DNA of 64,000 nucleotides from Oculina patagonica (lineage: Eukaryota). A model generated the notes under the pieces. It saw only the letters and a list, made by a program, of their open reading frames with translations. It did no database searches and was not told the DNA's origin. Of the stretch, positions 23,226-60,597 are shown piece by piece. The stretch is taken from positions 1,550,001 through 1,614,000 of the forward strand of contig NC_135771.1 of the NCBI RefSeq assembly GCF_052425735.1. The letters run 5' to 3'. Position 1 is the first letter of the stretch. The number at the start of each line of letters is the position of its first letter. A program made the translations under genes and the position numbers.

Positions 23226-25361
23226 ATGGCGCCATGTGACAAGAAAGCGCGAAGAAGGCTTCGAAGCATGGACTTGCTCAAACTAGCCTTGATTGTAATC
23301 ACTTTCTCGGGTGTTTATTTATTTATGATGGTACATCGGATAGAAAATCCATTCATGCAGGCGGATCTGTCGCTACCAGTAAACTTTGAACCTGACTTGC
23401 AGTGGAATGACTCGTACATTGAAGGAATGGGCAAAACAGAAGAAATTTCCGATCACTTGGAAAATGACGATACTTTAAATGATCTGTTCAACTTTCACAA
23501 AGATTCTACAAAAGAAAATACATCTTCATCTCAACATTCATTCCAGCGCAAATCCAATTTCAGAAAACGACGAAATTTATCTAAGTCCAGGCGCATCTCC
23601 AAAATGAGGAGTGAATTAAACAGGCGAGAAACTTCGGATTCTCGGAACCTGTCAATTTCCGAGCAAAAACTGGCGCCGACTGCGTCACGACGTTTCTCCG
23701 ACGATCATCGGAAGTCGGTGGAGTCAAAAGTAGCACATCAACAGTCATTCGAGTCTCAGTCGGATCCCGAACGACAGCCTGAAACAACAAATTCTTCCCG
23801 AAGGTTTAACAATGATCACCCGACGAATCTTGGAAAGGAACTTTTTAAGATTGGGTCGAGAGAGAAAGAGCAACAGTCAGAGTCATTACACTTATCCAAC
23901 GATGACATGAAACAGTCGGAACCATTATATTTACCAAATGATGAATTAAAACCCAAGCAAACAAAACGCCAGGAATCAGATTTTCCTGAATCTCATGCTG
24001 AGTCGCACCAACAAAAGAAGCACAAAATTCCGTCTTCAAGCCATGCAAATAACTCCAAATCCAGTAGAAATTTCACGACTTCTGATGGTATCGATGGTGG
24101 TAAATTAGAAGAAAAATTCAACGATCGTTCTCTAGCGGATAATCGAACTGTCTACAGTAAAGATACATCATTTCCAGATGCCAGCATTAAGGGATCTATA
24201 GCTAAACCAAAATTTTCAAATACTCAAGACTTTGCACTGAATCAGTTGCAAAAAGCAAGTTCTAATATTGAACAGCACTCAAGCAAAGCTGCTTTGAATC
24301 CCCAAGGTAACTGGCCTCCAAAAAGCTTGAATAATAAGCAGGATTCCGAGCCGCTTCCGAAGACATCTTCGGGGAAACGAAGAAGCCTCCTTATCTTCGG
24401 CGACGATCGTTCCGGAACAACCTTCGTGACTAAGATGTTTGCTGCCGATCCTCAAATGTTTACAGTATATGAACCACTATGGGTTACAAAAAAGTGGTTC
24501 TCACAACTCAAGTTAATGGATTATCACACAAAAGTCAAATTCACAGTGGATGTGGTAAATGCCTTGTTATCTTGCCAATTCACACGTTCAAAGGCAGGTA
24601 AAACCTTTCTTGGCTACACGTCTGAATCATGGGTTGGTCCTCGCGTATTCGAGAAAAACGTTTTCAGGACTGCTCCGTTTGCAAACAAAACAAAATCAGG
24701 AAGAAGAACTTGGCCTAATCTTTATCGCAAACCGGAATTCGCTGAACAAGTTTGTCTAAACCAATTTAACCACAGTGTAGTCAAAGTAGGACAGATTCGC
24801 GTTCCAGGTGAAAGTCTTTCAGTGTTTATTCCGCGTGTGTTTCGAGAGAACCCAGACACTGATATCCGAGTTCTTCAAATCGTACGCGATCCGAGGGGAA
24901 GTATCAACTCACGAATAAGGGCTGGCTGGATTTCTGATTTCACTTACACGGAATTTCCCAAACTAGCGGAAAAGTTGTGCGCCAAAATCGAATCAAACAT
25001 AGAGTTTGGTAGAAGCTTAAAAAGTGAATGGCTGAAAGAACGATATATGGAGATCAATTACAGAGAGATTACTACAATGCCTATTACTACGGCTAAGAAA
25101 ATATATAAATTTGCTGGCTTTGAAATGACAGACAGTTTGATTGATTGGATTGTCAAGAGCACGAATCCGGAACAGGATCAACTGCAACAAGCCTTAACTA
25201 ATCCATATTCTCACGTCAGAGATTCTAGCAAGAACAACCTAAAGTGGCGTAAAGAATCTCCGATAAAACGCGTGCGAATTATCGAGAAACAATGTAAGAA
25301 CCTGTTAGACTTACTTGGACTCGATGCAGTTGCTGATGAAATGGAAATATTATGTTCTTAG
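23226..25361 (+). CDS. Golgi type II carbohydrate sulfotransferase-like protein (CHST1-7 / Gal-GlcNAc 6-O-sulfotransferase-like), 711 aa
   Basis: Short basic tail, TM helix at about aa 16-35 and a long polar stem. Catalytic motifs: 5'-PSB IFGDDRSGTTF, VYEPLW, 3'-PB IVRDPRGSINSR, INYREI, and WR near the C-terminus. A splice acceptor ttttaccag ends at 23194, just before the ATG. Confidence 0.88.
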   Translation: MAPCDKKARRRLRSMDLLKLALIVITFSGVYLFMMVHRIENPFMQADLSLPVNFEPDLQWNDSYIEGMGKTEEISDHLENDDTLNDLFNFHKDSTKENTSSSQHSFQRKSNFRKRRNLSKSRRISKMRSELNRRETSDSRNLSISEQKLAPTASRRFSDDHRKSVESKVAHQQSFESQSDPERQPETTNSSRRFNNDHPTNLGKELFKIGSREKEQQSESLHLSNDDMKQSEPLYLPNDELKPKQTKRQESDFPESHAESHQQKKHKIPSSSHANNSKSSRNFTTSDGIDGGKLEEKFNDRSLADNRTVYSKDTSFPDASIKGSIAKPKFSNTQDFALNQLQKASSNIEQHSSKAALNPQGNWPPKSLNNKQDSEPLPKTSSGKRRSLLIFGDDRSGTTFVTKMFAADPQMFTVYEPLWVTKKWFSQLKLMDYHTKVKFTVDVVNALLSCQFTRSKAGKTFLGYTSESWVGPRVFEKNVFRTAPFANKTKSGRRTWPNLYRKPEFAEQVCLNQFNHSVVKVGQIRVPGESLSVFIPRVFRENPDTDIRVLQIVRDPRGSINSRIRAGWISDFTYTEFPKLAEKLCAKIESNIEFGRSLKSEWLKERYMEINYREITTMPITTAKKIYKFAGFEMTDSLIDWIVKSTNPEQDQLQQALTNPYSHVRDSSKNNLKWRKESPIKRVRIIEKQCKNLLDLLGLDAVADEMEILCS

Positions 25362-39579: not shown

Positions 39580-39602
39580 TGGGACTCGAACTCGAGACCT
39601 CC
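39246..39602 (-). mobile_element. 5'-truncated SINE with Nin/Deu-like domain and (TAGATG)n tail
   Basis: B-box remnant at about 39580-39600, a GGGTTCTTTTACGTCCC domain, and a (CTACAT)n tail on the plus strand. Confidence 0.7.
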
Positions 39603-39729
39603 TTACATTTTATTTTAATTACCCCACATTAATCACATTCATTGTTATTTTGACACCCTGTTATCTTATGCCTATTTAATGTTTATAAAATTATTGTTTT
39701 TCACTATAATAGCAATAATTAGACTGTCT

Positions 39730-42700
39730 TCAAACACGGCAGTTCTGTATGTTGAATGTCACAATATCATGAGCACAAATTTCTACAAGGAGAGAAAAAG
39801 AGTATTCTAAATATATTAAATTTCTAGTATATTAATCAAGTGTCATTTTGTAGCAACTGCAGTGTAGATTTCTTTGAAAATGGAATTGTTGATCTTCATT
39901 GTCCAAATATGATAATTATCGTTGTCAGATAAGACAACGTTTGATCATGATGACATGGACATGGGCTTTACCAATATTCTCAATTATGCAGATGCAGATA
40001 TTGTGTTGATGAATATGACTCACAATGAAAATAATGTAATGCCAACAATTGAAGTGGTTTATACCCTTGCACATCAACTTACCCTCTAGTTTGTCTAGTA
40101 TGTGATTCTCTTCTTGTTGAAGTATCATGGACTGAACTGCTACCCAGTCACTGTCATCCAAAGGAGAAAGTGTAGCAGACCTCTGAACATAAATCAGATC
40201 AAGAAAAACATTACCCTCACTGGTAACTCACACAAGAGACCTTTGAGAAGCTAGGGGACAGATATGGCAGGGTGACAAGAGCACTCACCTCCCACCATTG
40301 GGCCCCAGGTTCAAATTCCACACCCCGAATCATATAATGGGTGGAGTTCGTCCTTGCTCTGATGGTTTTTCTCTGTGTTCTCCGACCCAGTTTTTCTCCC
40401 TCCACTAAGAGCCAACACTTCTAACTTGGGAATACACAACCCACATGCTTCTAGCTTAAAACACAACTGAGCATACAATCTGCTTGTTTTGTTTTTGATT
40501 TTAATTAAAAATAACAAGTGTCAGTCATTCTTCTTACCTTTCCAGGAGTTATTTTTAGTGCTTTTGCAAGATTTGTCCTTTTCACATTGTATTCAACCAT
40601 TACATATCTAGCCAAAAAAAAAAAAAAAATTAAACCAAACAAAAATATAACATTAAAAATGAAACTTATTTAAAACATGCCTCAGAGCAAAAGGTACAAG
40701 GATTAGTTCTATCAAGTACTCTTAAAAGTCTGACGTTGAGTTACTTTAGAATGAATTTATTATTGATGGATAACAATTAATTACATAATAAACAAACAGA
40801 AATTATATATATAATTGAATAATAATAAAAAAGGAAAGTCATGATACAAACTTGTTTGCATTGATGATTCCTTCAATTCGTGATTTTATAGTCTTAATCA
40901 CATCCTGCAGGTTGAAAAGTGTTGATAATTTGATGAATAGAAATGTTCTCTGACCATTCAAACTTCAAAGCAAACATCTCAACTGTCTGTTCAAACATTT
41001 GGTACCATAAGATTGCATTTTATTTTTCTTCAGTGAATTGCTTTCTTTATTCAATTTTAAGGTGGCTCGTACCAGTTTTTCTTATGTGGGAAGTCTGGTG
41101 ACTAGCGCGCGCGTCACGCTTCATCCATGGATATCCACGAGTCACGCGTGAGACTTGAAAAGGAAAACAAACATGGCGGCCCAGTGCGAGGTTGCTTTTC
41201 CTCAATTGAAGAAAAAATTCCGCGTTCAACTGAAGTTGTTTCAACAAGAACATTTTAAGTAAACTTAATGTTCGTCAATCAAATTGTTTTCGGATCTCAC
41301 TGCTCGAGTTACAAAAGCAAATTCGCATGTGCCTGATGTGCTACGATCGATCTTGTCGGAGATCGTGAGTCAATTCCACTTTTTTCGTTTCAGCTTATTT
41401 GAGTTCGCTGTCAAACACATGATTATTCAGACAAAGAAATACTTGAAAGTAAGACCTAAGAAGCTTAAGCACAACTGGCGCCAACTGAAACTGGCTAAAT
41501 CCCATGAAATCCTGAGCCGAAAAGTTTCGCAGACAAAGCGAGGGGAAGTCCACGCGTGTTGCGCGCGTATGTGCCCGCAAAGATCAGCGGTAGTCAGAAC
41601 TGAGCATGAGTAAATGCCAAACATATAAAATCGAAATTTTGAAGTGCGCGGAAACGCGCGTGGGAATTATCGAGTTCGCGAAGGCTTTAGCAAGAAAACT
41701 AACCCGATGACCCCTATTTTTTATTGCCCTAATATTTTCCTTTTATGTAAAGGAAACGTCAGAAAAAATCTAAAAAAATTCTACGAAAGGAATTTTTAAC
41801 TACTTACAAATTGCCCTTTTTTGCATTTGCAAAAAATCCGCTTCGTAGAATTTTTTTAAAATCATTATTAATACAGTTTCTTTTTCAGATGCCAAAAGTT
41901 ATCATGAGAAAAAAAATTGGGGTCATCGAGTTAGTTTTCAAGATATAAGCACCGGAAGCTGAAAAAGGGTCCTGAAAATCATTGGCTATCGTTGCCATGG
42001 TAACCACTGATGACGTAATTATTGGTATTTTGGAACAACAACACAATGGGTTTTTTAATCATACAAAAATTTTGTTACGATCTTTAATTGATTTTTTGGT
42101 CATTTTCTTCCAAAGGTCGCACAGTCAAAAACCTGAAAACTGGTACGAGCCACCTTAAGTTCATTTTTTGGATTATTGATGATTGATTTTTATTGGGCTA
42201 TTCTGAGCCCCAGGTTCTCAGAATGGGCACAGGATAATAATGTGTTATTTTGCAAGGTTTTTGGCTTGAATCCCCTTACGCCACTGGAAATCCCTGTTAA
42301 GCCATATATACCCTCCTTTAAAAATTTTGCCTTTTGAGACCCCCCCCCCACACACACACACACCTTGAAATTTCCAATGACCTTTCATGGTGTGGGAATG
42401 AATATTTTCTGGAACTGCATGCACAATGTACAAGAATATCTATGAACTGTCAACATTAATAATAAAACATACTAACCTGGAAGTGAGTATTAGGGTTTGC
42501 AATGAGCACAGCCTGTAAACAAATGTGAGAAAAAGAGTTAACTATTTTAACTACCAATCTATACAGAGGCCCTGCCAGGGGGGGTCCCCGTGTCGCTTGT
42601 CTAAATTTTAAAATGTGCCGTGTCGCTGTTTTATCAAACTTTGCGTCGCTGTCGTTACTTGTTCTTGTCGGAATTTAAGTTTTTCCAAAAGGGTTGTCGT

Positions 42701-45700
42701 TTGCCGCAATTTCATTTTACGTGCTGTCGCTACTTTTTGGACCATGTCGCTTGTCGGAATTTACCCTGGCAGGGCCTCTATACAGGGCCATAAGCAGAGG
42801 GGTGTGATCCATGGGTGCATCTGCACCCACTCACTGGCCACAAAGGTCTGCCTAATCGGGATGTGAGAGTTAAAATGTCTCTCAGAATGCAGGAAATGAA
42901 GAATTAATCAACTTTATTTTTCAAAACTTCCCGGGGGAGAATACCCCTGGACTCCAGAAGATGCTCATGCCTCTGGCCCACCCCTTCAAGATCCTGCCTA
43001 CGGCCCTGCTATAGCCTGCAGTTTCTTTACTACATGTATTTGTTATGACTTGAAGATACTAAGACATTTTTGCACCTCTGTCTCCAAAATTTCAGAAACT
43101 ACTTCAAGGCCAGCTGCTCGCATAGTGTCTCCAGTTTCAACAAGATCAACTAGAAGATTAAAAAAGAAAGAAAGATTAAAAAGAGTTTTTTGTAAAAAAA
43201 AAGATAATTTCTTTATGTGCAGTTTAAAAAAAATATCTATACCCACCACATGGAAGGTCATTAGAAATCAAAAGCCAAAATTTTAAAGGAAAGTATGGTG
43301 CTCAACTGGAATTTCCAGTGTGGAGGGGGGATTCAAATTTATTTAAAAAACCTTCTGTGGGAGGGGTATGGATATTATCTGGAAAACACAAGACAAAGAG
43401 ATGAATGAAGACACACTACTCACCAATGCCATCAGCAACTCCAAGGTTGCAAGCAACCTAAAATGCAATCAAATATTATTTTACTACCGGTACTAGTTAT
43501 AAACAGTAGCTTGTACCTGCCTCAAATTCTTTCCACTTCTTTCTTAGCGATTTAACAAATACGAGGAATAAAGGATACAATAATATAGCCTAATATATAA
43601 TTAAACTAACTCGAGCTCCACTTTTCACACAGTGGATGAACATTGAAGTTGTGTACGGTATATAGCTGCAGTTAAGTTTTGTTTTTACTTTACTTCCAAA
43701 TTTGGGTATGAATCAGTTTACTCAGTCGCCTGCGTGCTTGCACACAATTCCAGCAAGTACGTTTTTAGATAATTTAAACCTGGTCATCTTTAAAGACCAA
43801 TGGCAAACAAACACTTGAATTAAGCCACAATCAATAAAAATAATGAGCCCATGAGGTTCAGCAATATAGGAATACAAACAATTCACAATATAGGAAATCA
43901 TGCTTACCTCGACTGATCCACTGACATAATTTATTTTCGTTGTGTTTTGAGGATCAAATTGCTGTGTTAAAAAATAAAATTAAATGTATATGTTGTTGTT
44001 TGAAATAAATTTTGGTATTAACAACTTAAAAGTAGTAAAATCTCTTTTAATCTTTTGTCAGCAACATTAAAAACTCAGATTTATATAATACCCGTAATTT
44101 ATTTTACTTACAGCAAAGTACTTTCTTGCTACATTTGGAAATGATGTAACTATTCTCTTTCCTGTGGGGAGATTATAAATAAATTATAAATATAAATAAA
44201 ACAATGAATGAATGAATAAATAAACCATAAAAAACATAAATTAATTTTTGGTCCTCCCTTGTTTGATTTTATCAAGTTTCAATTCTACTTTTCTTTTAAC
44301 ATGCAAAATGATGCAGTTTGCTTGGATTAGGGGCGTTTACGTTCTCCTTGTATAGCAATTTCATTACACCACTTTCAGTGTTATGTACATAGCGGCTTTC
44401 TATGGACATCCATCTTTTGATGTGCTAATTAAACAAAAAAACATGGATCGAAATCTGCCAATCACAGCCAACTAACATGACCTTCTGACCTTGTGTGCTC
44501 ATTTGCATGAAAGGTGAATGCAGAAAGAAAGCTATGCATGTAACACTGAAAGGGCATATACTAAAACCCGAAACAACGAAACGAAACCACCGAAACGAAA
44601 CCACCGAAACCACCGAAACGAGCGAAACGAAACCGCCGAAACAAACGAAACGGCCGAAACGAGCGAAACGAAACGAAATCACCGAAACAAGCAAAACTTC
44701 AAGATTTTCGCCACTTACCGTACTATACACCCCGTTTAGCCTACTATACACTCTGATTACACTACCAATCTTAGTTCAATGAAAAACCCATGAATATCTC
44801 GTGGAAACCCCATGAACCCATTTTCATGGTCATGAAAATGGAGATTGTCAATTTCATGGTGTTTCTGAGCCCATGAATTTTCCGTGAAATATGAAGTAGT
44901 ATTTTTCATGACCCATGAAAAAAGATTTCATGGCCATGAAAAATGTTGAAAATTCCTAAGTCAGATTTCATGGGCATGAAAAATCCATGAAATCAAAATA
45001 AATGAAATTCACAACCCATGAAAAAACTTTCACGGCCATGAAAATTGGTAACAGACGGAAGTTGGTTTTCATGGCCATGAAATTTCAATGAAATGTAAAC
45101 ATATATATTTCATGACCCATGAAAAGCTCTAATATTCTGTAGATTTTGAATCGTATATTTTCTTGCACTGGGTCACATGTACACCTGTCATATGAAAGTT
45201 ATTTATGGGGCATGCACACAAACATTAGTAATATTCCCATGAGTTATCCAAGAATCTTTGGACACAAAAATAATGGTAAGAAACAACATATTAAGAGGAA
45301 ACTTGCGTATTTAATTTGCTACTTTTAGTGGTGAGCAAAATTTCACTATTGTGACCATATGTCAACTAGTACTGGAAACAAGTTTCAATTCACAAATTAT
45401 CCAAAAAATCTGTTCTCTTAAAATGCTGATTGACCATCTGACCAACATGATGAGCTATATTCATATGAAATTTCTATGAAATCTGAAGTGACCTGTAGAA
45501 CACACCAAATTAAAGACTGATTTTATGGGGCATGAAATTTCCATGAAATTTAAACTTACAATTTCATGACCCATGTAAAAGCATATATTCTTTTGGAGTT
45601 ATGAATTTCATGGATCGTAAATTTCCATGAAAGTATTGCTTATAATTAAGACATGACACCATGAAATATTCTTAACGCCTTCATGAATTATGGGTCATCA

Positions 45701-48700
45701 ATTAAGAAAACTACAACAGCTGAGCGGTATCTTGGCTTACATAAGTTTGAATCGATGAGCTTTGTTTGTATTCTATTGAAAATATACATATTTTTGCTGT
45801 TCTGAACAACCTGCATTTGTGTAAAATAATGCCAAATGACACCATTTAGCCTTGTGTACAACTAGTTTAATAAAATCACACAAGTTTCTTTAGTTTTGGA
45901 ATCTATTAAGTGGCAAAACAGTCTTATCCTGTTTATGTTGACATTCTCTCTTATATTGCCCATAAGCACTGCCTTCGTCCTGAAATTAAAAAGATAAAGA
46001 TAATTGATTTCGGAAGTTTGTTACCTTAGTGTTATGAATAAAATGCGGCTGTTACAGCTATAATTGATTCACCATTTGGATTTGCATTATTGCTCCTGTG
46101 CGAGTGTCTGATCTAGTACAAGAAACTCACCATCCTAGCCTTTGATGTTAATTTAACGCTTAAAATCGTTTCTAGCATCAATAGGTTTAACAAATTTTAT
46201 AATTTAAGGCGCAAAGATTTCTGTTTACCTGCTGAAAAACTGCAGGGATTGGCCTGTAAAAGTTGTGTGGACTGCAGCACCGCATATTCTTGGTTGATCA
46301 TTGTCTTGCCAACGAAAATCCAAACTTTTCAACCTTTCAGAATTTGAACCGATTGGAATAACCAAGGGCATCTTGATTTGTGGCTACATGTCCAGCTTTA
46401 TAGTACAAGCGTATTATAAACTAAGTAAAACACTGTGTTTCTCTTCTGAAAATCGAGTACAGCAACACTCCGCCATGTTGAATCCATCCCATGATGCTTT
46501 GGGAATTATGTTAAAATGGTACTTTTGACCAGCGGATTGTCATTCCAAAAGTCGTTTTTTTCTGGCGGTAATGTTGAATCGATCTGTCTCTGGCAATTCT
46601 GTTTAGTTGTATTTATCATGAGATTCCCTTCAAAATTGCACGTAAAAGATCAAGTAAGGATCGTAAATGTTTCAGAGAATGGAAAGCAACTACGGGCAAG
46701 TAAGTATTAGTGTAGTTCAAGAAGAAGACCATCAAATCCTACCCAGCGATAGAGCACTTAATTACGTAACTGAAGTTGATCGTCGACTTAAGCTTACATT
46801 TGTAAAACAAACTTTTAGCTTATATCAGCACTGATTTTTTGATATATTTATTCAGCTGAAAAACTAAAAGAAAGCTACTGCTCCTTGAATGTTTTGAACA
46901 CTTGTAACTTACGAAATTCGTATACACAATCACTGGTGATGCGCTTTTCTAAAGACTTACAAGTAAGATTATTACCGACCTTGTATGTTGCTTTGTATTT
47001 TATTACAGCTTTTGAACTTCCAATGAAAGCAGGATAGCTTGAAAAAAACAGAGTTACTCAATGAACGCTAAGTGTAAAGAATGTTATGTTATGTTAAAAC
47101 AAGGTTATAATTTTTTTTTTATATATATGAATCAGCTGTAGAATATTTGTGAATTAAGTCTTACGTCTGTTTAGAGACCCTTTCTTTTCATGTTTGACAC
47201 ATTTGGTATGAGCTGAGCTTTTAATTGCAATGCAGTTGTATTTTGTGTTATTGTTATAGAAATAATACATTGTTGTTTAACATTAAACATTTCAATGAGA
47301 AAATGAATGTAACTTGTGAAACAATATCTGACTGACTTTAGAGAATTTTGGTATGTTTCTTTGTATAATTTTATTGTTTATGGACTATATATTGATGGCA
47401 TATTCATGGGGTGCAGCAGTGATTATTCACCCCATGAAAGTAACGGAGGGCCGGATTTCATGGGCCATAATAATGCTGTGAAAAGGCCATGAAAGTAGTG
47501 GGAAAATTTTCATGGGCCATTAAAAACTCCCCGTTCAGGGGTTTTTCATGGGCCATGAATTTTGTATCCCATGAATTTTCACACCATGAAAATCTGGTAG
47601 TGAGTTTCATGGCTTTGCTTTCTAAACCATGAAAATCTCATGAAATTAATTAATGGCATTTTCATGGATTTTTAATGACTTTTCTTTTCAGACTAGAAAT
47701 TTCATGGCCATTAAACGGGAGTTTTTAAGGTGATTTTCATGGCATTTTTAATGGTAATTTCATGGGTCCACTCCATGAAAAACCCCTGAATTTAAGCCAT
47801 GAAAAAGCTGTTAAAAAGTCATGAAAAACCTGTGATTTTCCCATGAAAATATTCACAGGATTTTAATGGGTTTTGGTTTCCTAGTGTTAGCCTACTATAA
47901 ACCCTGGTTAGCCTACTATACACTCCTGTTAGCCTACTACACACTCCGGTTAGCCTACGTTTCACTTAGGTTAGCCTACTATGCACTCCGGTTAGCCTGT
48001 TTACGGTTAGCTCTCAATAATTGTAATGGGTTTTGCTTGTTTCGGTGATTTCGTCTCGTTTCGCTCGTTTCGGCCGTTTCGGTTGTTTCGGCGGTTTCGT
48101 TTCGGTCGTTTCGGTGGTTTCGCTCGTTTCGGTCGTTTCGTTTCGGTGGTTTCGTTTCGTTGTTTCGGGTTTTAGTACATGCCCACTGAAAGCGGGTGTA
48201 TTGTACCTGATTTTCACTTCTTTATACAGTACTATATTATAAAAAAATCCCTCCAATAAAAATGATAATAATATGGATATCCATACCAACAAGTTCCTCT
48301 GCACTTGTAATGTTTGATGTAACAGCTGCCTGTTGGTAAAAAAAAAAAAAGAATTGACTGAAATTACCAGCTCATTGAATATCTACAGTAAACTTAACTG
48401 ACAACAATCAGGCAACAGTAAGCTGGGGATGTGAAAGTGATGAGGCAAAAGTTATTTGGTATCTGCAGAAAGAAGGTGATCTGTGGAGTTAAGGAAATTG
48501 ACTTCAGACTGACAAGGTAAAGGTCACAACCACAAAGAAAGGGCGACCTTTGACTGCTGATCAGAGAGGATTCGTAAATTGTCCCATTACTAACCTGTAC
48601 TGCAAGTTTACACTTGCCAAAACCAAGCTTTAAAAGTTCATGAACTGAAATAAAAAAATGCTGATCAATAACCAAAAGTCTTGTTTAAGTATTTACAAAG

Positions 48701-51700
48701 TGTTTACAGTGCTTTAAGCATTGACAGCTGACAAAAAGCGTTGGCTTCTTTTGCTTTACTTTGCTTACAGACGTCAGCTACTTTTTCCACAAAATTGAAG
48801 TAAAAGTACTGTTTCAAAAGGTTGATTACTCTGCTTAGTTGCCTACTTGTCTGAACTTTAATAATGTAAAACCCCTGCGTTTATTTTAGGCGAGTGCCTG
48901 TAATGTTGTAAAGAGGAGTTCATCCGTATAATAAAAATAATTTATTGTAAAATAAGGTAATGGCACCTTCTCCTCCACTTTCTGCTACAACATCTTGTCC
49001 AGTGATACCCAAGTCAATTCTGATGAAAAAGTTTGTGACAATCATAATAATTAGAAACTCTTATTTATAACTGCTGCTTTTGAAGTTGAGAAAAGAGAAA
49101 TTGACCCTAATTTCTTCAACCCACAGATTTTAGTGAGCTTAACACTCGTGCACTCAGGCATGAAGCAGATGCGGTAGCCTAATAGTTGGCATGTACTAAA
49201 ACCCGAAACAACGAAACGTAACCACCGAAACGAAACGACCGAAACGAGCGAAACAACCGAAACGGCCAAAACGAGACGAAATCACCGAAACAAGCAAAAC
49301 CCATTACAATTATTGAGAGCTAACCGTAAACAGGCTAACCAGAGTGCATAGTAGGCTAACCGGAGTGGGTAGTAGGCTAACCAGAGTGTATAGTAGGCTA
49401 ACCGGGGTTAATGGTAGGCTAATTGGAGTGTAAAGTAGGCTAAACGGGGTGTATAGTACGGTAAGTGACGGAATTCTTGAAGTTTTGCTTGTTTCGGTGA
49501 TTTCGTTTCGTTTCGCTCGTTTCGGTCGTTTTGTTTCGGTGATTTCGTTTCGTTTCGCTCGTTTCGGCCGTTTCGTTTCGGTGGTTTCGTTTCGTTGTTT
49601 CGGGTTTTAGTATATGCCTAATAGTCAGTGCACTGCACTCCGGATTGAGTGGTCCAGGTTCTAGTCCTGGGTAGGACCGTCACTGTGTTGTGTTCTTGGG
49701 TAAGACAATGTACTCTCACATACATGTAGTGCCTCTCTTCATACAGGCATATAAATGGGTATTGGTGAAAAAAAAACCTTCTGGGTTTAACCCTGCAATA
49801 ACTAGCATCTCATCCAGGTGAAAGTAGAAATACTCCAAGTCATTTTATGCAACTGAAACCAAGATATAAACTCCAGCGCAGTAGGCCAATTGCCAGAATG
49901 CCAACTTTACTTTATCTACTCGGGCTTCAACCTTTTTCAAGTGACGGCAAGAGATGGCATGAGTATTGCTACTACCACCCCCTCCCCCCAACCCCACCTC
50001 CCATTTTGTGAAGATCCCCCAAAAAATTCACCAAAACCCTTTTATACCTCTGAAAGGTGAGAAGCACTCTGGAGGTCTATAACTTTAGCCACTTGGCTGC
50101 CAGGTTTTCCACATGTACAAATCAGGCTTTTATTTAATTTGTTAACTGACCTTCCCTGACTAACATAAAGAGCAATGTCCGCAGCTGGGAGGAAGACAAG
50201 AGCCACTGGAAAAAACAAACAAACACAAAACAAAAACAGTCACTGTGGTAACAAAAATGAGCAATAAAATCTTGACAGCCTTGACTTGCTGGGCCTTGAG
50301 CTATTTTTGTACAAAATGTTATGTACATGTAGATTGATTTAATTTTAAACACAACAATTTTTTTAAGCTAAAAACCTACTGTTGAGGGAGGTACAGAGAG
50401 CCAAATCTAAGCGTGATTTCTTGCGATACTGAAAGAGAGAGAAGGAATGTTTCACTAAAATCATCAACTTTTTAACCCTTTAACCGGCAGATTTCTGTGA
50501 CTTTCTAACGGTTTTTTCTGGGCTTATATATTCTGTAGAACTTCGTGATTGCATATAAGAAGTTCAAGTAAAAATGTGTGCTGTTTCGAAACACCGAGGG
50601 CTCAGATTTTTATTGTGACGTCAGTAGTCGGCAGTTGCTTCTTTCGTAGGCGAGCTGTTGGGCTTGGATTTGGCTCGTTTTGTGTTTATAAGTGATTTTT
50701 CGAGTCATTTTTCACTGCAGAAGCCCCCAGGCTGGCATCATTAAGCTAGAATGGTGGGTAGAGGCCAGCATCTGAAAGAAACCAGAGGTGAGAGATGATT
50801 TTGTCTTGATTGGAACGCCAAAAATATTCGAATCGAAAGATGGCGGTTCATGAGTAAAGTTGTCTCTCTGGCCGTTCTGTGGGTGGCTTCCGAGACCTGC
50901 CAAGGCAATTTGGACGAGTTCTGACTTCAAAAGAATGCAATCGGTGCAACATTTTGCCGGCAGGATTGGGTGGCTCGACACTTATAAAAAATATATGGAA
51001 TAGAGGTAGGTAGCCTTTCATGCCGCCGCCATGACTGTTTTTCCCAGGCATCCCTATCGGTCACCAATGAGGAAATTACAGGTTTGCAAGCATAGCTCTA
51101 ATTGAATAGTAATTGCCGAGTCTGCTGAATGATTGATGGGAAATTTCCTTGGTGAACGGAAAGGAATAGGGTTGACGTTTGCTGCAAATGTATATTTTTG
51201 AAGTCAGAATTATTTTTTCATTAAAAAAAATGGAGGCAAAGATGTGTGTTTTTTGTTGTTGTCCTGTTACGTAGAAAACGGGCATTTTCAGATTTGCTGC
51301 TGAACAAACAACCATATGCAACAGAAATCAAGAGTTGTAGTCAGTTAGTTGGCTTTTAAAGCTATGAAAATTATCACTTTGCCATAAAAAGCAGTCATTA
51401 CTATCATGTGCCCAGATATGTAAAAGCTAGAGATTTTTCAATCACTGCTGGTGTTTATCGTACACATATGTACGATTGCCGGTTAAAGGGTTAAAATAGA
51501 ATATATGAGGCAAAGAAACAGCTCGGGCATTGCCTCAAAATGGCTTCAAGTCTTGGATGCAACTTTCAAATCATGAACAGGATAATCATTCAACTAAAGC
51601 ATATTAATGCTAATAGTGTCTTTGCATTATCAAAGTTAAATGTTGTTTTATTTTTTGTACTAGTAATCTTTACCCTTATAGCTACTGGAGTAAATTTGCG

Positions 51701-54133
51701 ATGATCATGAAAGAAACATTTTCAAATTAGAACTTGCAAAAAAATTATACCACCATGATAATACAGTCAACTCTCGCCTTGCAGGCACCTCGCTATTACG
51801 GACACCCTGTTATTATGGACAGAAGTTGAAGTCCCGGCGAATAAGAATAACTGAAAATTACTCTCACTACAGTACAGACTTCCATTATTATATTACGGAC
51901 ACAAAATTGTGGTCCCAAAGGTGTCTGTTATAGAGTGGAACCCCGATATATAACGATCTTCGATATAATGATATTCCCGATATAACGATGATTATTATTC
52001 AACAGATGCGCGCGCTGCCCATATATGGTCAAAAAGTTAACGATATCTGTCATCCGTACATAACAGATATCCTGCGGTATACGTAGGTTGCGAACAATCG
52101 TCCGAAATTTTGTAAAGCGCTGCATAATTACCGTTTTTCTTTCTGCAAAATGTGTTTCGTTGACAATTTGTCGAATAATAAAACAATTATCCTGCTCAAT
52201 CTTGCGGAATATCGTCTGATTTTAGCCAACTCGGCCTACGGCCTCGTCGGCTAAGTATCAGGCGATATTCCGCGCGATTTCGCAGGATAATTGTTAAATA
52301 TTCTACATGTATGTCCCGGCAAAAGTTACAGTAAAATGTATGGGACGGAACCCCAATATAAGGATCTTTGATATAACGATATAATGATGAGAATTTAGAG
52401 GACCGAACATAAAATCTTTCCCGATATAACGATATTATCAGTACACAGTCACAAGACATAACAATAAACTATTATTATTATTATTATAGAATTTAATGCA
52501 GTAACATTAACATAATCGAGTAATCTCTAATGTTTCTGTAAACAGACTTGTACGATGAAATACGAAAATGATACTGTGTTCTAAGCCTCCTATCAACTTT
52601 ATTCCCTTTATCCTCCTTTAATATGCAGTAAAAAGTACTTGTTAGGTTGACCCCGATATAACGATATTTTCGGTTCTTTTACGGCCATATCGTTATATCA
52701 GGAGTTTCGATATAACGATTCCTTGATATAGCGATATATTTTTACTGCTCCCTTGGCAAATCGTTAAATCAGGGTTCCACTGTATAGGGAGTTGACGGTA
52801 CCTGTATTCCAGCTCTTTCCAGCATAGAAATACACTGATCATAAAGTCTTCCCTTCTTTGGAACAGCCATCAGCATACGTCTTTTTAGCTGCTCATCACT
52901 GATATGAAGTCTAAAGAAAGAACATAAAAATGCTAGTGATGACAATTAGCCTCACCTTTTCAATCATACTGTAAATGATCTAAAAAATGCCTGGGGCGTC
53001 TATTAAATTATAGGGGTCCTGGAGGGGGAGGGGGCATTAAATAAACATGAGGCGTGTATTAAAGAGAGGCATTTATTTCACTTTAACTGTAACAATGTAA
53101 ACAAAGCAAATACTGGTACCGAAAGCAAAGCAACTACCATAATCTTTTTATTTCACGAGAGTGGTTTAACGAGCTACGGCTCCTAAGCTCTTCGTGGATA
53201 AATATATTATGTCTATGTCTATGTCTAATTTAGTTTGTTCACATAGTAAACAGACAACTCTCTTTCAACGGACACCACTATAAGATGGATACCTGATGTT
53301 GGTCCCATCCCTGGCATGGGAAGCAGGAGGTTCAGATCCCCCTGCCCCCCCTTCACCTCCCCCTCCCCCCAACAAACATAATTTTGTAACAAGACTCAGT
53401 GTTGTGTGACACTGGTCTGCCAAGACCCAGACAAGAGGAAGGTAGTGGGGGCAGGGGGGTGGTTGCCCAGGAAAATAGGTGAGAGAGGGGTAGGGAGTGC
53501 AAGAAGAAAGGGCTAAAAGCAGGAGGAGCTGGGGTGGGAGTGGGTGGGATTGGGGAAAATTTACCAACATTTTGCAACATCACGTAATAGCATGCAGTAA
53601 AATAGCACAAAAAGGCAGGAACAAAAGAGTAAATGGCATGCATGGGGAAAGGAGGATTAAATAAACAAAAATGTTTTCATAACTGGTTTCTGTTTATTTG
53701 TTTTATAATTTTCAGATATATTAGAATGTCTCTTGAAGTTTATCTTAGGAGGTATCATAACACTGTAGCAATGCGAAAGTTATGTACGAACTTCCTCTCT
53801 AGATCTAGTACCCACCTCTCCCCCTACTCCCCGGTACCCGCACAACTCTCTAATGGCGTGGTGCAACTCTGTTAATTTGCCGCGTTATACAAAGCAACAG
53901 AGAAAATTAAAACTCTCGACTTTGGTTTTCACCCCTGTTAACACCTTTGAGGTCTCTAAAGGCGCCCGCAGCCATTTCTCAGGACACGTGTTCATGTTTA
54001 TATAATAAGTAGTGCCGTGGAAACACCGAAATTAGATAAAACTCACGCTAAAATAAACGAGCTAGGGCGACGTTAAAACACCTTACCTGTTACACCGTTC
54101 CTCAGTAGATGAGTCTGCTTGAATGCTTGCCAT
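39730..54133 (-). CDS. hisG: ATP phosphoribosyltransferase (long-form HisG, fungal HIS1-like), 309 aa, first step of histidine biosynthesis
   Basis: 16 exons: 54133-54087, 52910-52802, 50428-50380, 50205-50151, 49019-48967, 48644-48595, 48329-48287, 44161-44112, 43961-43908, 43457-43424, 43149-43076, 42512-42477, 40904-40852, 40607-40538, 40182-40083, 39782-39730. Total 930 nt, all GT-AG and in phase. Motifs: AVPKKGRL, FLPAADIA, DLGITGQD, LGFGKCKL, RIVTSFP, SGSVEVAC, DLVETGDTMRAAGL, ITPGKRSATLSPL, C-terminal NCRV. Confidence 0.96.
41061..42154. mobile_element. Kolobok-like non-autonomous DNA transposon
   Basis: TTAA|GGTGGCTCGTACCAGTTTT ... AAAACTGGTACGAGCCACC|TTAA. Confidence 0.88.
42564..42780. 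mobile_element. hAT-like MITE with TGTCGC subrepeats
   Basis: CAGAGGCCCTGCCAGGG / CCCTGGCAGGGCCTCTA. A second CAGGGCC...GGCCCTG element is adjacent (about 42783-43007). Confidence 0.7.
44553..48183. mobile_element. MULE/Foldback-like MITE with (CGAAA)n-rich long TIRs, interrupted by a CACTA element
   Basis: GGCATATACTAAAACCCGAAAC / GTTTCGGGTTTTAGTACATGCC; 9-bp TSD CACTGAAAG at 44544-44552 and 48184-48192. Confidence 0.88.
44760..47886. mobile_element. Non-autonomous CACTA/EnSpm-like element
   Basis: TTA|CACTA...TAGTG|TTA (3-bp TSD). Dozens of subterminal CCATGAAA/TTTCATGG motifs at about 44780-45690 and 47400-47870. Confidence 0.82.
49188..49618. mobile_element. Uninterrupted copy of the (CGAAA)n MITE, in opposite orientation, inserted in a SINE head
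   Basis: Same TIRs and internal TAGTAGGCTAACC repeats; flanks TAATAGTT/TAATAGTC. Confidence 0.88.
50476..51490. mobile_element. piggyBac-like non-autonomous element
   Basis: TTAA|CCCTTTAACCGGCA ... TGCCGGTTAAAGGG|TTAA. Confidence 0.88.
51764..52798. mobile_element. Nested TA-targeting (pogo/Tigger-type) MITEs containing a ~114-bp hairpin element
   Basis: Outer element CAGTCAACTCTC...GGGAGTTGACGG. Inner element GAGTGGAACCCCGAT...ATCAGGGTTCCACTG (about 51932-52782). Hairpin at 52182-52295. Confidence 0.75.
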
Positions 54134-59238: not shown

Positions 59239-60597
59239 TTAGAATTGTTTTAGAGGAGAGAATAAAAGATACCTGATCAAGTGAGCTGGAAGTGGTAACT
59301 GGGGAATCTCCCGGGCAGGAACATGATTAATTACAACCAATCTACACATGTGCTGAAGATTTAAAATTAAAGGGAGCTGCCAAACCCTGATTCGTCCATC
59401 TTTGTAACCGGCAGCAATCTGTTGGCACGTTCGTGTAAACGCCAGGCAAGAAACTTCTGTGTTCTGGTACCAAGTTCTTAAACCATCTGGTTGTTGGTGC
59501 GCATTGAGGACAAATAATACATGTAAGCTCTCTGAATTCAAAGCTAAGACTTTGGAATCCGAGGTACCTACTGCAAGCATTGTGCCATCAGGGGAAAAGG
59601 CGGCAGATCTTATCTTCTGCCATGGAGTCTGCAGCGCATAAGCAAACTGAATGCAAGTCAAGCCAGGTTCATCCGCAGCAAGAGACCACGTCTGTATCGT
59701 GCCATCCTCAAGACATGACGTCAAGTACTTATGACCATAGCGAGGATCAAATAAATACCAACATTGTAAGTGAGAACTAAGTGATCGGCGACTTGTGTGA
59801 CGGAATGGAAGGCACAAACACGTGGACGACGTCGAAGAATCTAAGTCGAGACTACTATGGATGTGAAAATTCTGAGTGTCGAAAACAATTAGCTGTCCAG
59901 AAGTACATGACACGGCTAAGAACAAACCATCAGGGGAAAACACACACGATCTCGCGTGCCCACGAATCTTTGAGCTTGAATTCGTTGCCGATTTCATTTT
60001 TCTCACCATCTTCTTGGTAGCAATGTCAATAATACAGATATGATTTAAATCTCCTGTTAATTTAGATGCCACGACAAGCGAGCGACCATCCGGAGAGAAC
60101 GAACAGCACATTAAAACTCCTCGTCTCTTTCGCCAAAATCTTCGCATGTGAACAACTTCAGCGCTGGTAGTTTTCCACGATCGCATTCGTACCAAAGCGA
60201 GAGAATCCTCGCTAAAAATGCAAACGACCATTTGCCCATCAGGTGAAAAATCACACGATCTAAAAGAGCGCGGAAAATCAGCCAAAAATCCAGTGTTGAT
60301 TTGCCTTCGATTCAGGTCCCATAATCTTATCGACGAAAATTCGCGATTATGGCGTAAGAAAGTCGTTTGTTCTACTTTGGATGCCGTTAAAAGTACGCTA
60401 TCGTCGTCGCTTGGAAAGAAACACGAATAAATGTCCTTGTCTTCGTGTTTTAGTTGAATAACAACGTCGAATAGGTGTTCATGACGATTTTCTGACGGCA
60501 ATGAACGATGTGATCTGCCCGACAAGCGAGGCACAGCTGCACGGTTCGAGAGGGAAAATTCTTCCGCGTGCCGTAAATTTGAAGCATTTGTTCCCAT
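59239..60597 (-). CDS. WD40-repeat and SOCS-box protein (WSB-like), intronless CDS, 452 aa
   Basis: Several CxFSPDG repeats and WD-type blade ends (IRLWD, IQTWS, IRVWQ); C-terminal SOCS box LQHMCRLVV...LPLPAHLIRYL. Confidence 0.9.
   Translation of the reverse strand: MGTNASNLRHAEEFSLSNRAAVPRLSGRSHRSLPSENRHEHLFDVVIQLKHEDKDIYSCFFPSDDDSVLLTASKVEQTTFLRHNREFSSIRLWDLNRRQINTGFLADFPRSFRSCDFSPDGQMVVCIFSEDSLALVRMRSWKTTSAEVVHMRRFWRKRRGVLMCCSFSPDGRSLVVASKLTGDLNHICIIDIATKKMVRKMKSATNSSSKIRGHARSCVFSPDGLFLAVSCTSGQLIVFDTQNFHIHSSLDLDSSTSSTCLCLPFRHTSRRSLSSHLQCWYLFDPRYGHKYLTSCLEDGTIQTWSLAADEPGLTCIQFAYALQTPWQKIRSAAFSPDGTMLAVGTSDSKVLALNSESLHVLFVLNAHQQPDGLRTWYQNTEVSCLAFTRTCQQIAAGYKDGRIRVWQLPLILNLQHMCRLVVINHVPAREIPQLPLPAHLIRYLLFSPLKQF

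Follow-up and report, generated by a model that had tools for sequence, protein, structure and literature searches.

An intact HIS1 gene of sixteen mini-exons, encoding a predicted long-form ATP phosphoribosyltransferase, in the robust-clade coral Oculina patagonica

The HIS1 locus and its exon-intron structure

The window analysed here, a 64,000-nt stretch of the Oculina patagonica genome without any N (NC_135771.1, positions 1,550,001 to 1,614,000; C14:1550001-1614000 in our contig numbering), carries on its minus strand a gene for HIS1, or ATP phosphoribosyltransferase (ATP-PRT), that extends from an ATG at 54133 to a TGA ending at 39730 and is divided into 16 exons by 15 introns. Once spliced, its coding sequence (CDS) amounts to 930 nt and translates into 309 residues with no internal stop. 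Only one copy is present in the 529-Mb assembly.

De novo histidine synthesis is remarkable in an animal and bears on the extent to which algal symbionts have to supply corals with an "essential" amino acid. As mentioned in the initial annotation of this DNA, a fungal-like pathway has been reported in robust-clade corals, namely by Ying et al. (2018), who described it as complete in Fungia, Goniastrea and Stylophora and as absent from complex corals and sea anemones (PMC6214176).

Translated from stop to stop, the minus strand from 54400 down to 39600 yields a series of short peptides resembling HisG. Exon boundaries were set with AG/GT dinucleotides and phase continuity required at each of them, and exons 7 and 10 were recovered by a phase-constrained AG..GT scan. 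The model was then supported by several lines of comparison: orthologous contigs from five other coral assemblies (L012, L013, L014, L018, and L016 plus L017, which are two contigs of a single assembly); the published coral proteins; single-exon searches against the Pfam profiles HisG (PF01634, cut-off 25.5 bits) and HisG_C (PF08029, cut-off 23.5 bits); and transcript evidence in the form of assembled contigs over 39600-45500 (exons 8-16), from runs X15, X18 and X20, which are RNA by guess. The resulting features are as follows.

39730-54133, minus strand: HIS1/ATP phosphoribosyltransferase gene, start to stop codon; rebuilt model, blastp match to E. coli HisG, single copy
54087-54133, minus strand: exon 1, 47 nt, from Met1 to the first two bases of codon 16, donor GTAAGG; the N-terminus MASIQADSS...EERCN, followed by R across the junction, agrees with the published Fungia and Goniastrea proteins
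52802-52910, minus strand: exon 2, 109 nt, residues 16-52, with AVPKKGRLY; length and AG/GT the same in L016 and L017
50380-50428, minus strand: exon 3, 49 nt, residues 53-69; splice sites and phase, cross-species conservation
50151-50205, minus strand: exon 4, 55 nt, residues 69-87, with FLPAADI at 50174-50194; cross-species conservation
48967-49019, minus strand: exon 5, 53 nt, residues 87-105, with DLGITG; Pfam HisG profile positions 13-30, 14.9 bits
48595-48644, minus strand: exon 6, 50 nt, residues 105-121; Pfam HisG profile positions 31-56, 16.4 bits
48287-48329, minus strand: exon 7, 43 nt, residues 122-136; phase-constrained scan; kept in L016 and L017, and part of the published Fungia and Stylophora proteins
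44112-44161, minus strand: exon 8, 50 nt, residues 136-152; Pfam HisG profile positions 65-86, 18.3 bits; X18 and X20 depth fits exon-only coverage
43908-43961, minus strand: exon 9, 54 nt, residues 153-170; exon-only depth in X18 and X20, cross-species conservation
43424-43457, minus strand: exon 10, 34 nt, residues 171-182, the smallest exon; phase-constrained scan, conserved in L016, L017 and L018
43076-43149, minus strand: exon 11, 74 nt, residues 182-206, with the phosphoribosyl pyrophosphate (PRPP) loop DLVETGDT; Pfam HisG profile positions 106-133, 26.6 bits
42477-42512, minus strand: exon 12, 36 nt, residues 207-218; splice sites and phase, cross-species conservation
40852-40904, minus strand: exon 13, 53 nt, residues 219-236; splice sites and phase, cross-species conservation
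40538-40607, minus strand: exon 14, 70 nt, residues 236-259, where the regulatory domain begins; Pfam HisG_C profile positions 3-26, 24.2 bits
40083-40182, minus strand: exon 15, 100 nt, residues 260-293; Pfam HisG_C profile positions 27-59, 29.7 bits; an X18 contig joins 40083 to 39782
39730-39782, minus strand: exon 16, 53 nt including the stop, residues 293-309, with EICAHDI at 39763-39783 and NCRV at 39733-39744; joined to exon 15 in contigs of X18 and X15

All 15 introns are of the GT..AG type, with pyrimidine-rich acceptors and consistent phases, and the exons measure 34-109 nt (mean 58 nt). Rebuilding the gene returned the same 16 exons and 15 introns, at the same coordinates, as the initial annotation, which had described an intact and very intron-dense HIS1/hisG gene. 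With 15 introns in 930 nt, or 16 per kb of CDS, intron density is far above the cnidarian average: in eight cnidarian genomes, an mRNA has 5.3-7.4 exons and exon length averages 219-355 nt. This complete 16-exon map, validated across species, is a modestly new detail.

Identity of the encoded protein

When the exons were searched singly, exons 5, 6, 8 and 11 matched the Pfam HisG profile colinearly in genomic order, exon 11 being the only one above the cut-off, and exons 14 and 15 matched HisG_C in order, each above the cut-off and in frame with the catalytic exons. Such colinear matches of separate exons to HisG and HisG_C cannot have arisen by chance. A six-frame search of the whole genome with the HisG profile returned no match, which is a false negative caused by exons that are too short for this approach. 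The spliced protein, by contrast, aligns over residues 27-306 with residues 6-296 of E. coli K-12 HisG (31% identity, E 3e-35, blastp), its PRPP loop DLVETGDT (residues 183-190) lying opposite the E. coli DLVSTGAT. Compared with PDB sequences, exon 15 alone matches the Mycobacterium tuberculosis ATP-PRT chains 5u99, 5lht and 1nh7, and exon 16 alone has no match.

The presence of HisG_C on the same polypeptide separates the long form of the enzyme from the short, HisZ-dependent form. HisG and HisG_C are here found on one chain, which designates a long-form enzyme. The bacterial long-form proteins (E. coli P60757; M. tuberculosis Rv2121c, PDB 1nh7/1nh8, 5lht and 5u99) share its domain order and can be aligned with it from end to end, although the relation to these is far more distant and the bacterial genes are intronless. 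The closer likeness is to fungal HIS1 (among others Saccharomyces cerevisiae P00498 and Yarrowia lipolytica Q99145), which is likewise a long-form protein of about 300 residues with HisG and HisG_C, and which shares with the coral protein the motifs AVPKKGRLY, LVFLPAADI, DLGITG and VDLVE(S/T)G(E/D)TMRAAGL as well as the tail NCRV. The match of FLPAADI and NCRV to fungal HIS1, previously proposed from the sequence of the locus, is thus borne out by the fungal sequences of the published supplementary FASTA. Unlike its fungal counterparts, the coral protein bears a 26-residue N-terminal extension, and its gene is split by 15 introns.

By homology, the HIS1 protein would commit the cell to histidine synthesis by carrying out its first step, the condensation of ATP and PRPP into phosphoribosyl-ATP. 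Catalysis would take place in the two-lobed HisG domain encoded by exons 2-13, whereas the C-terminal HisG_C domain, encoded by exons 14-16, would bind histidine and thereby shut the enzyme off, as in other long-form enzymes. For the coral protein, catalysis, assembly into hexamers and feedback by histidine are all predicted from sequence.

Transcription and splicing

A 1046-nt contig of run X18 passes directly from 39641-39782 into 40083-40182, reproducing to the exact base the predicted junction between exons 16 and 15, and a 608-nt contig of run X15 is composed of the pieces 39632-39782 and 40538-40895, separated by 100 letters of the record, which is the length of exon 15. The depth of X18 and X20 is zero in the intron bins 39797-39993, 40191-40387, 42161-42357 and 43540-43736, where the DNA run X1 has a depth of 34-92, and the small X18 depths that remain equal those expected of one contig (depth 10.5) lying over exons 8, 9, 13, 14, 15 and 16 only. 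HIS1 is therefore transcribed, and spliced at the predicted junctions wherever the RNA-type contigs cover it (exons 8, 9 and 13-16).

Intron 13 (40608-40851) is unspliced in the X15 contig, which is spliced at introns 14 and 15. As this contig is unbroken over 40538-40895, intron 13 is retained in some transcripts.

Relation to the published coral pathway

The gene of the window is the orthologue of the gene published for robust corals, and the finding as such has been known since 2018. Its protein product, carrying HisG and HisG_C, was named K00765 in that study, which also reported that all coral pathway genes except IGPD carry introns, that synteny is conserved around the loci, and that the coral pathway proteins have 40-60% similarity to their best Swiss-Prot matches, which are mostly fungal (PMC6214176). 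Like the gene of the window, the published gene contains introns and is chromosomal in the coral, where the other members of a fungal-like pathway occur as well. Compared by eye with the published coral FASTA (PMC6214176, supplementary file 6), the window protein is colinear with Stylophora_pistillata_8185 over all 309 residues, without gaps, and identical to Goniastrea gasp1.m3.565 from EERCN to DQCI, that is over 33 residues spanning the exon 1/2 junction. The start MASIQ... is common to the window, Fungia and Goniastrea proteins, each sequence block corresponds as well, and so does the tail ...AHDIVTFNIQNCRV, with the exception of a cysteine at position 295 (Cys295).

The published models for two of the three species depart from this structure. 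The Goniastrea model gasp1.m3.565 is without exons 7 and 8 (93 nt) and passes from exon 6 straight to exon 9, and the Fungia model ffun1.m4.9038 is without exons 13 and 14 (123 nt) and passes from exon 12 straight to exon 15, the frame being kept in both. Misannotation of mini-exons, which gene predictors tend to skip in this way, is the most likely cause of these gaps, real isoforms being the less likely explanation; exon 8 is included in X18 according to the depth of that run. Mini-exons of 34-109 nt have thus defeated two of three published models, for which the window supplies a complete map.

Searching the same genome for PRA-CH, Histidinol_dh, IGPD and His_biosynth (the aminotransferase and phosphatase families being too generic for such a search) revealed further members of the pathway. 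A HIS4-type multifunctional gene with PRA-CH and Histidinol_dh exons lies on the minus strand at C14:836933-845045, 745 kb from HIS1. An IGPD (HIS3-type) gene at C1:29987123-29987554 (L007) covers the whole Pfam profile in a single, intronless frame of 215 residues (215.8 bits), as found by Ying et al. in other robust corals and in sharp contrast to the 15 introns of HIS1, and His_biosynth exons occur at C1:13.62 Mb. Whereas pathway genes were placed on different scaffolds in the 2018 study (PMC6214176), HIS1 and the HIS4-like gene here share one chromosome-scale contig, which represents linkage but not a cluster.

The gene, its introns, its synteny, the fungal-sister phylogeny and the complete robust-coral pathway were therefore all published in 2018, and the locus confirms that point in one more robust-clade genome. 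To this it adds evidence for purifying selection, one candidate substitution at a regulatory site and the linkage of HIS1 with the HIS4-like gene on the same contig. No later literature extending the work on coral ATP-PRT was found.

Conservation and selection among corals

A search of a representative library of 1.84 billion proteins with exon 15 identified four short genomic open reading frames (ORFs) from other corals, which led to the orthologous contigs. These carry exons 2-16 (L016 and L017), 10-16 (L018), 12-16 (L014), 14-16 (L013) and 15-16 (L012), and no exon covered differs in length from its window counterpart, AG and GT being kept throughout. Their frames contain no stops and show 84-94% amino acid identity to the window protein. 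The ratio of non-synonymous to synonymous substitution (dN/dS, Nei-Gojobori) between the window and these contigs is 0.11-0.19, indicating that HIS1 is under purifying selection among corals. Intron lengths vary between species: intron 7 measures 4125 nt in the window and 130 nt in L016 and L017, and intron 9 measures 450 nt in the window and 1848 nt in L016.

Private changes over exons 10-16, polarised with L018 as the outgroup, comprise 8 synonymous and 2 non-synonymous changes in the window lineage and 6 and 3, respectively, in L016; the Gly-to-Cys change at position 295 is unscored by the codon-based test and brings the non-synonymous count of the window lineage to 3 when included. As these counts are similar to those of L016, there is no sign of relaxed constraint in the window lineage.

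Assignment of function

Considering these results, we regard the gene of the window with high confidence as the coral nuclear HIS1/HisG-L (EC 2.4.2.17, KEGG K00765), which very probably provides the working first enzyme of a coral-encoded histidine pathway. Several points weigh against this assignment. RNA-type evidence extends over exons 8-16 only and comes from contigs of runs guessed to be RNA; within this interval, exons 10-12 fall in depth bins swamped by repeats; and junctions 1-7 are supported by conservation across species and by the published proteins. On the biochemical side, the 2018 study itself reports no enzyme assay or labelling result for any coral ATP-PRT (PMC6214176). Finally, Cys295, which stands beside the histidine pocket, could impair folding or regulation in this species, a point to which we return below.

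Retention or transfer of the pathway

The history of the gene was considered on the basis of the published analysis (PMC6214176), whose authors favour ancestral retention followed by losses. The alternative is that an early ancestor of corals or hexacorals acquired the gene horizontally, from a fungus or some other eukaryote, and that the 15 introns were gained afterwards, in which case the identity and function of the gene would be unchanged and only its history would differ from vertical opisthokont inheritance with losses. Several observations are consistent with such a transfer: in Swiss-Prot the coral enzymes find their best matches among fungi, and the pathway is not known from any other group of animals (PMC6214176), the intron density of HIS1, far above the cnidarian average, might reflect an unusual intron history, and IGPD is intronless in the same genome. 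In the published tree, however, the coral proteins form their own clade beside the fungi, apart from Symbiodinium, plants and bacteria, and are sister to the fungal proteins rather than nested within them; in addition, the empty site of complex corals lies in conserved synteny, and corallimorpharians possess pathway genes (PMC6214176). The dispersal of the pathway genes over C14 and C1 also argues against this scenario, since it would require several independent transfers. We consider a transfer unlikely and, for the origin of the gene, follow the published analysis.

The Cys295 substitution at the histidine-sensing domain

The codon of Cys295, TGT at 39777-39775, belongs to the EICAHDI motif of exon 16. 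Corresponding codons are GGT or GGC in L012, L013, L014, L016, L017 and L018. Among the coral sequences compared, cysteine occupies this position in the window only, and glycine in the eight others, which come from the five assemblies and the three published proteins. Glycine is also present in four of five fungal proteins, in Symbiodinium, in plants and in bacteria, Schizosaccharomyces pombe HIS1 having a histidine. The coral contigs and published proteins thus confirm the earlier remark that a cysteine stands here near the C-terminus in place of the usual glycine. It had also been proposed to check reads at about 39777 for a G/T polymorphism: a contig of the DNA run X1 has the assembly letter, with no alternative letter at 39777 among the matches listed, and X1 may itself be the source sample. 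Other samples with the Cys allele were sought by looking up the exact products of two window ORFs, which overlap or adjoin exon 16, and no records were returned, and the exon 16 pattern, with N at the variable base, had no match among Joint Genome Institute (JGI) metagenome contigs.

Within the histidine-sensing domain, position 295 sits at the turn before the last strand. In M. tuberculosis, the sequence at the histidine pocket reads I-G-A-K-A273-I-L275, as given by mutagenesis primers (PMC13018310), and Cys295 corresponds to G270, three residues before the A273 position and five before that of L275. Pocket residues were taken from M. tuberculosis (D216, D218, T238, A249, L253, A273 and L275) and mapped by eye from these primers and from the exon 15 alignment. 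According to this mapping, Thr263 (T238, fully conserved) and Ala274 (A249) are kept in the coral protein, and substitutions occupy the other positions, among them Asn243 for D218, Met278 for L253, Asp298 for A273 and Val300 for L275; asparagine at the D218 position also occurs in Corynebacterium, and aspartate at the A273 position in fungi.

The substitution may be read in two further ways. It could be fixed and non-neutral, having changed feedback inhibition or made the first step thiol- or redox-sensitive, so that histidine supply would be regulated differently from other robust corals; we hold this to be quite improbable. It could also be a disabling hit to the regulatory domain of a gene that is becoming a pseudogene in this species, its frame not yet broken. 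The uniqueness of Cys295 among the nine coral sequences compared and its location at the G270 position, near the A273 and L275 positions of the histidine pocket, are in favour of such a decay, which is nevertheless difficult to reconcile with a frame and 30 splice dinucleotides that are all intact and with a window lineage showing no excess of non-synonymous changes over L016. The spliced X15 contig differs from the window by one letter in 151 nt (exon 16 and 3' flank), and we take its source to be this species or one very close to it. Furthermore, the histidine of S. pombe HIS1 suggests that glycine may not be indispensable at this position, and the variant A273G in the nearby M. tuberculosis pocket stayed active and inhibited by histidine (PMC13018310). 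Incipient pseudogenization is thus highly improbable, and a functional HIS1 gene remains the preferred interpretation.

Genomic context and intron repeats

Two further features of the window document the surroundings of HIS1.

59242-60597, minus strand: WD40-repeat and SOCS-box protein, single exon, 452 residues, directly upstream of HIS1 on the same strand; Pfam WD40 76.6 bits, SOCS_box 31.5 bits
44758-47889, minus strand: 3.13-kb repeat element in intron 7; 100% identical copy at C14:377594-380725

The combination of WD40 repeats with a SOCS box is a metazoan-type architecture. Intron 7 (44162-48286) is nested, the 3.13-kb element splitting an element of about 0.5 kb with inverted ends, whose halves (about 44550-44765 and 47887-48187) belong to a family of at least 30 genome copies at 97-100% identity. 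The larger element is without a long ORF and has 95% copies at C11:14883602-14886686 and C1199:27719-30803; its 100% identical copy, which C14 carries at a distance of 1.2 Mb, indicates a very recent insertion. In intron 14 (40183-40537), the segment at about 40246-40467 belongs to a repeat dispersed over many contigs, of which at least 40 copies are present at 69-79% identity, and copies of this repeat are the only genome matches to the 3' part of HIS1 other than itself. An animal DNA context and introns filled with transposable elements, both claimed in the initial annotation, are therefore corroborated by the WD40 and SOCS-box neighbour and by intron transposons that are many-copy and up to 100% identical.

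That the locus could be contaminating fungal, algal-symbiont or bacterial DNA in a coral scaffold, as its fungal-like motifs and the presence of FLPAADI in symbiont HisG proteins might suggest, is effectively refuted by its position inside a contig of at least 19.8 Mb (C14), by intron repeats that recur tens of times across many contigs, including the 100% identical 3.1-kb copy, by the flanking WD40 and SOCS-box gene and a LINE-type (long interspersed nuclear element) sequence in the window, by the same exon-intron structure in independent coral assemblies, and by the tail NCRV, found in other corals and in fungi, versus NTRM in Symbiodinium.

Introns 4 and 7 also have in common a short tandem repeat (about 49300-49620, 48020-48220 and 44500-44780), which translates as ...ETTETKRPKRAKRNEITE... 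on the gene strand, or FVSFRSFRPFR... for its reverse-strand counterpart, and which coincides with peaks of thousands in the depth of the DNA run. Elsewhere in the window, a single-exon ORF on the plus strand (23226-25358, 711 residues) has a C-terminal sulfotransferase domain, and an adenylate-kinase exon is found in addition to the LINE-type element.

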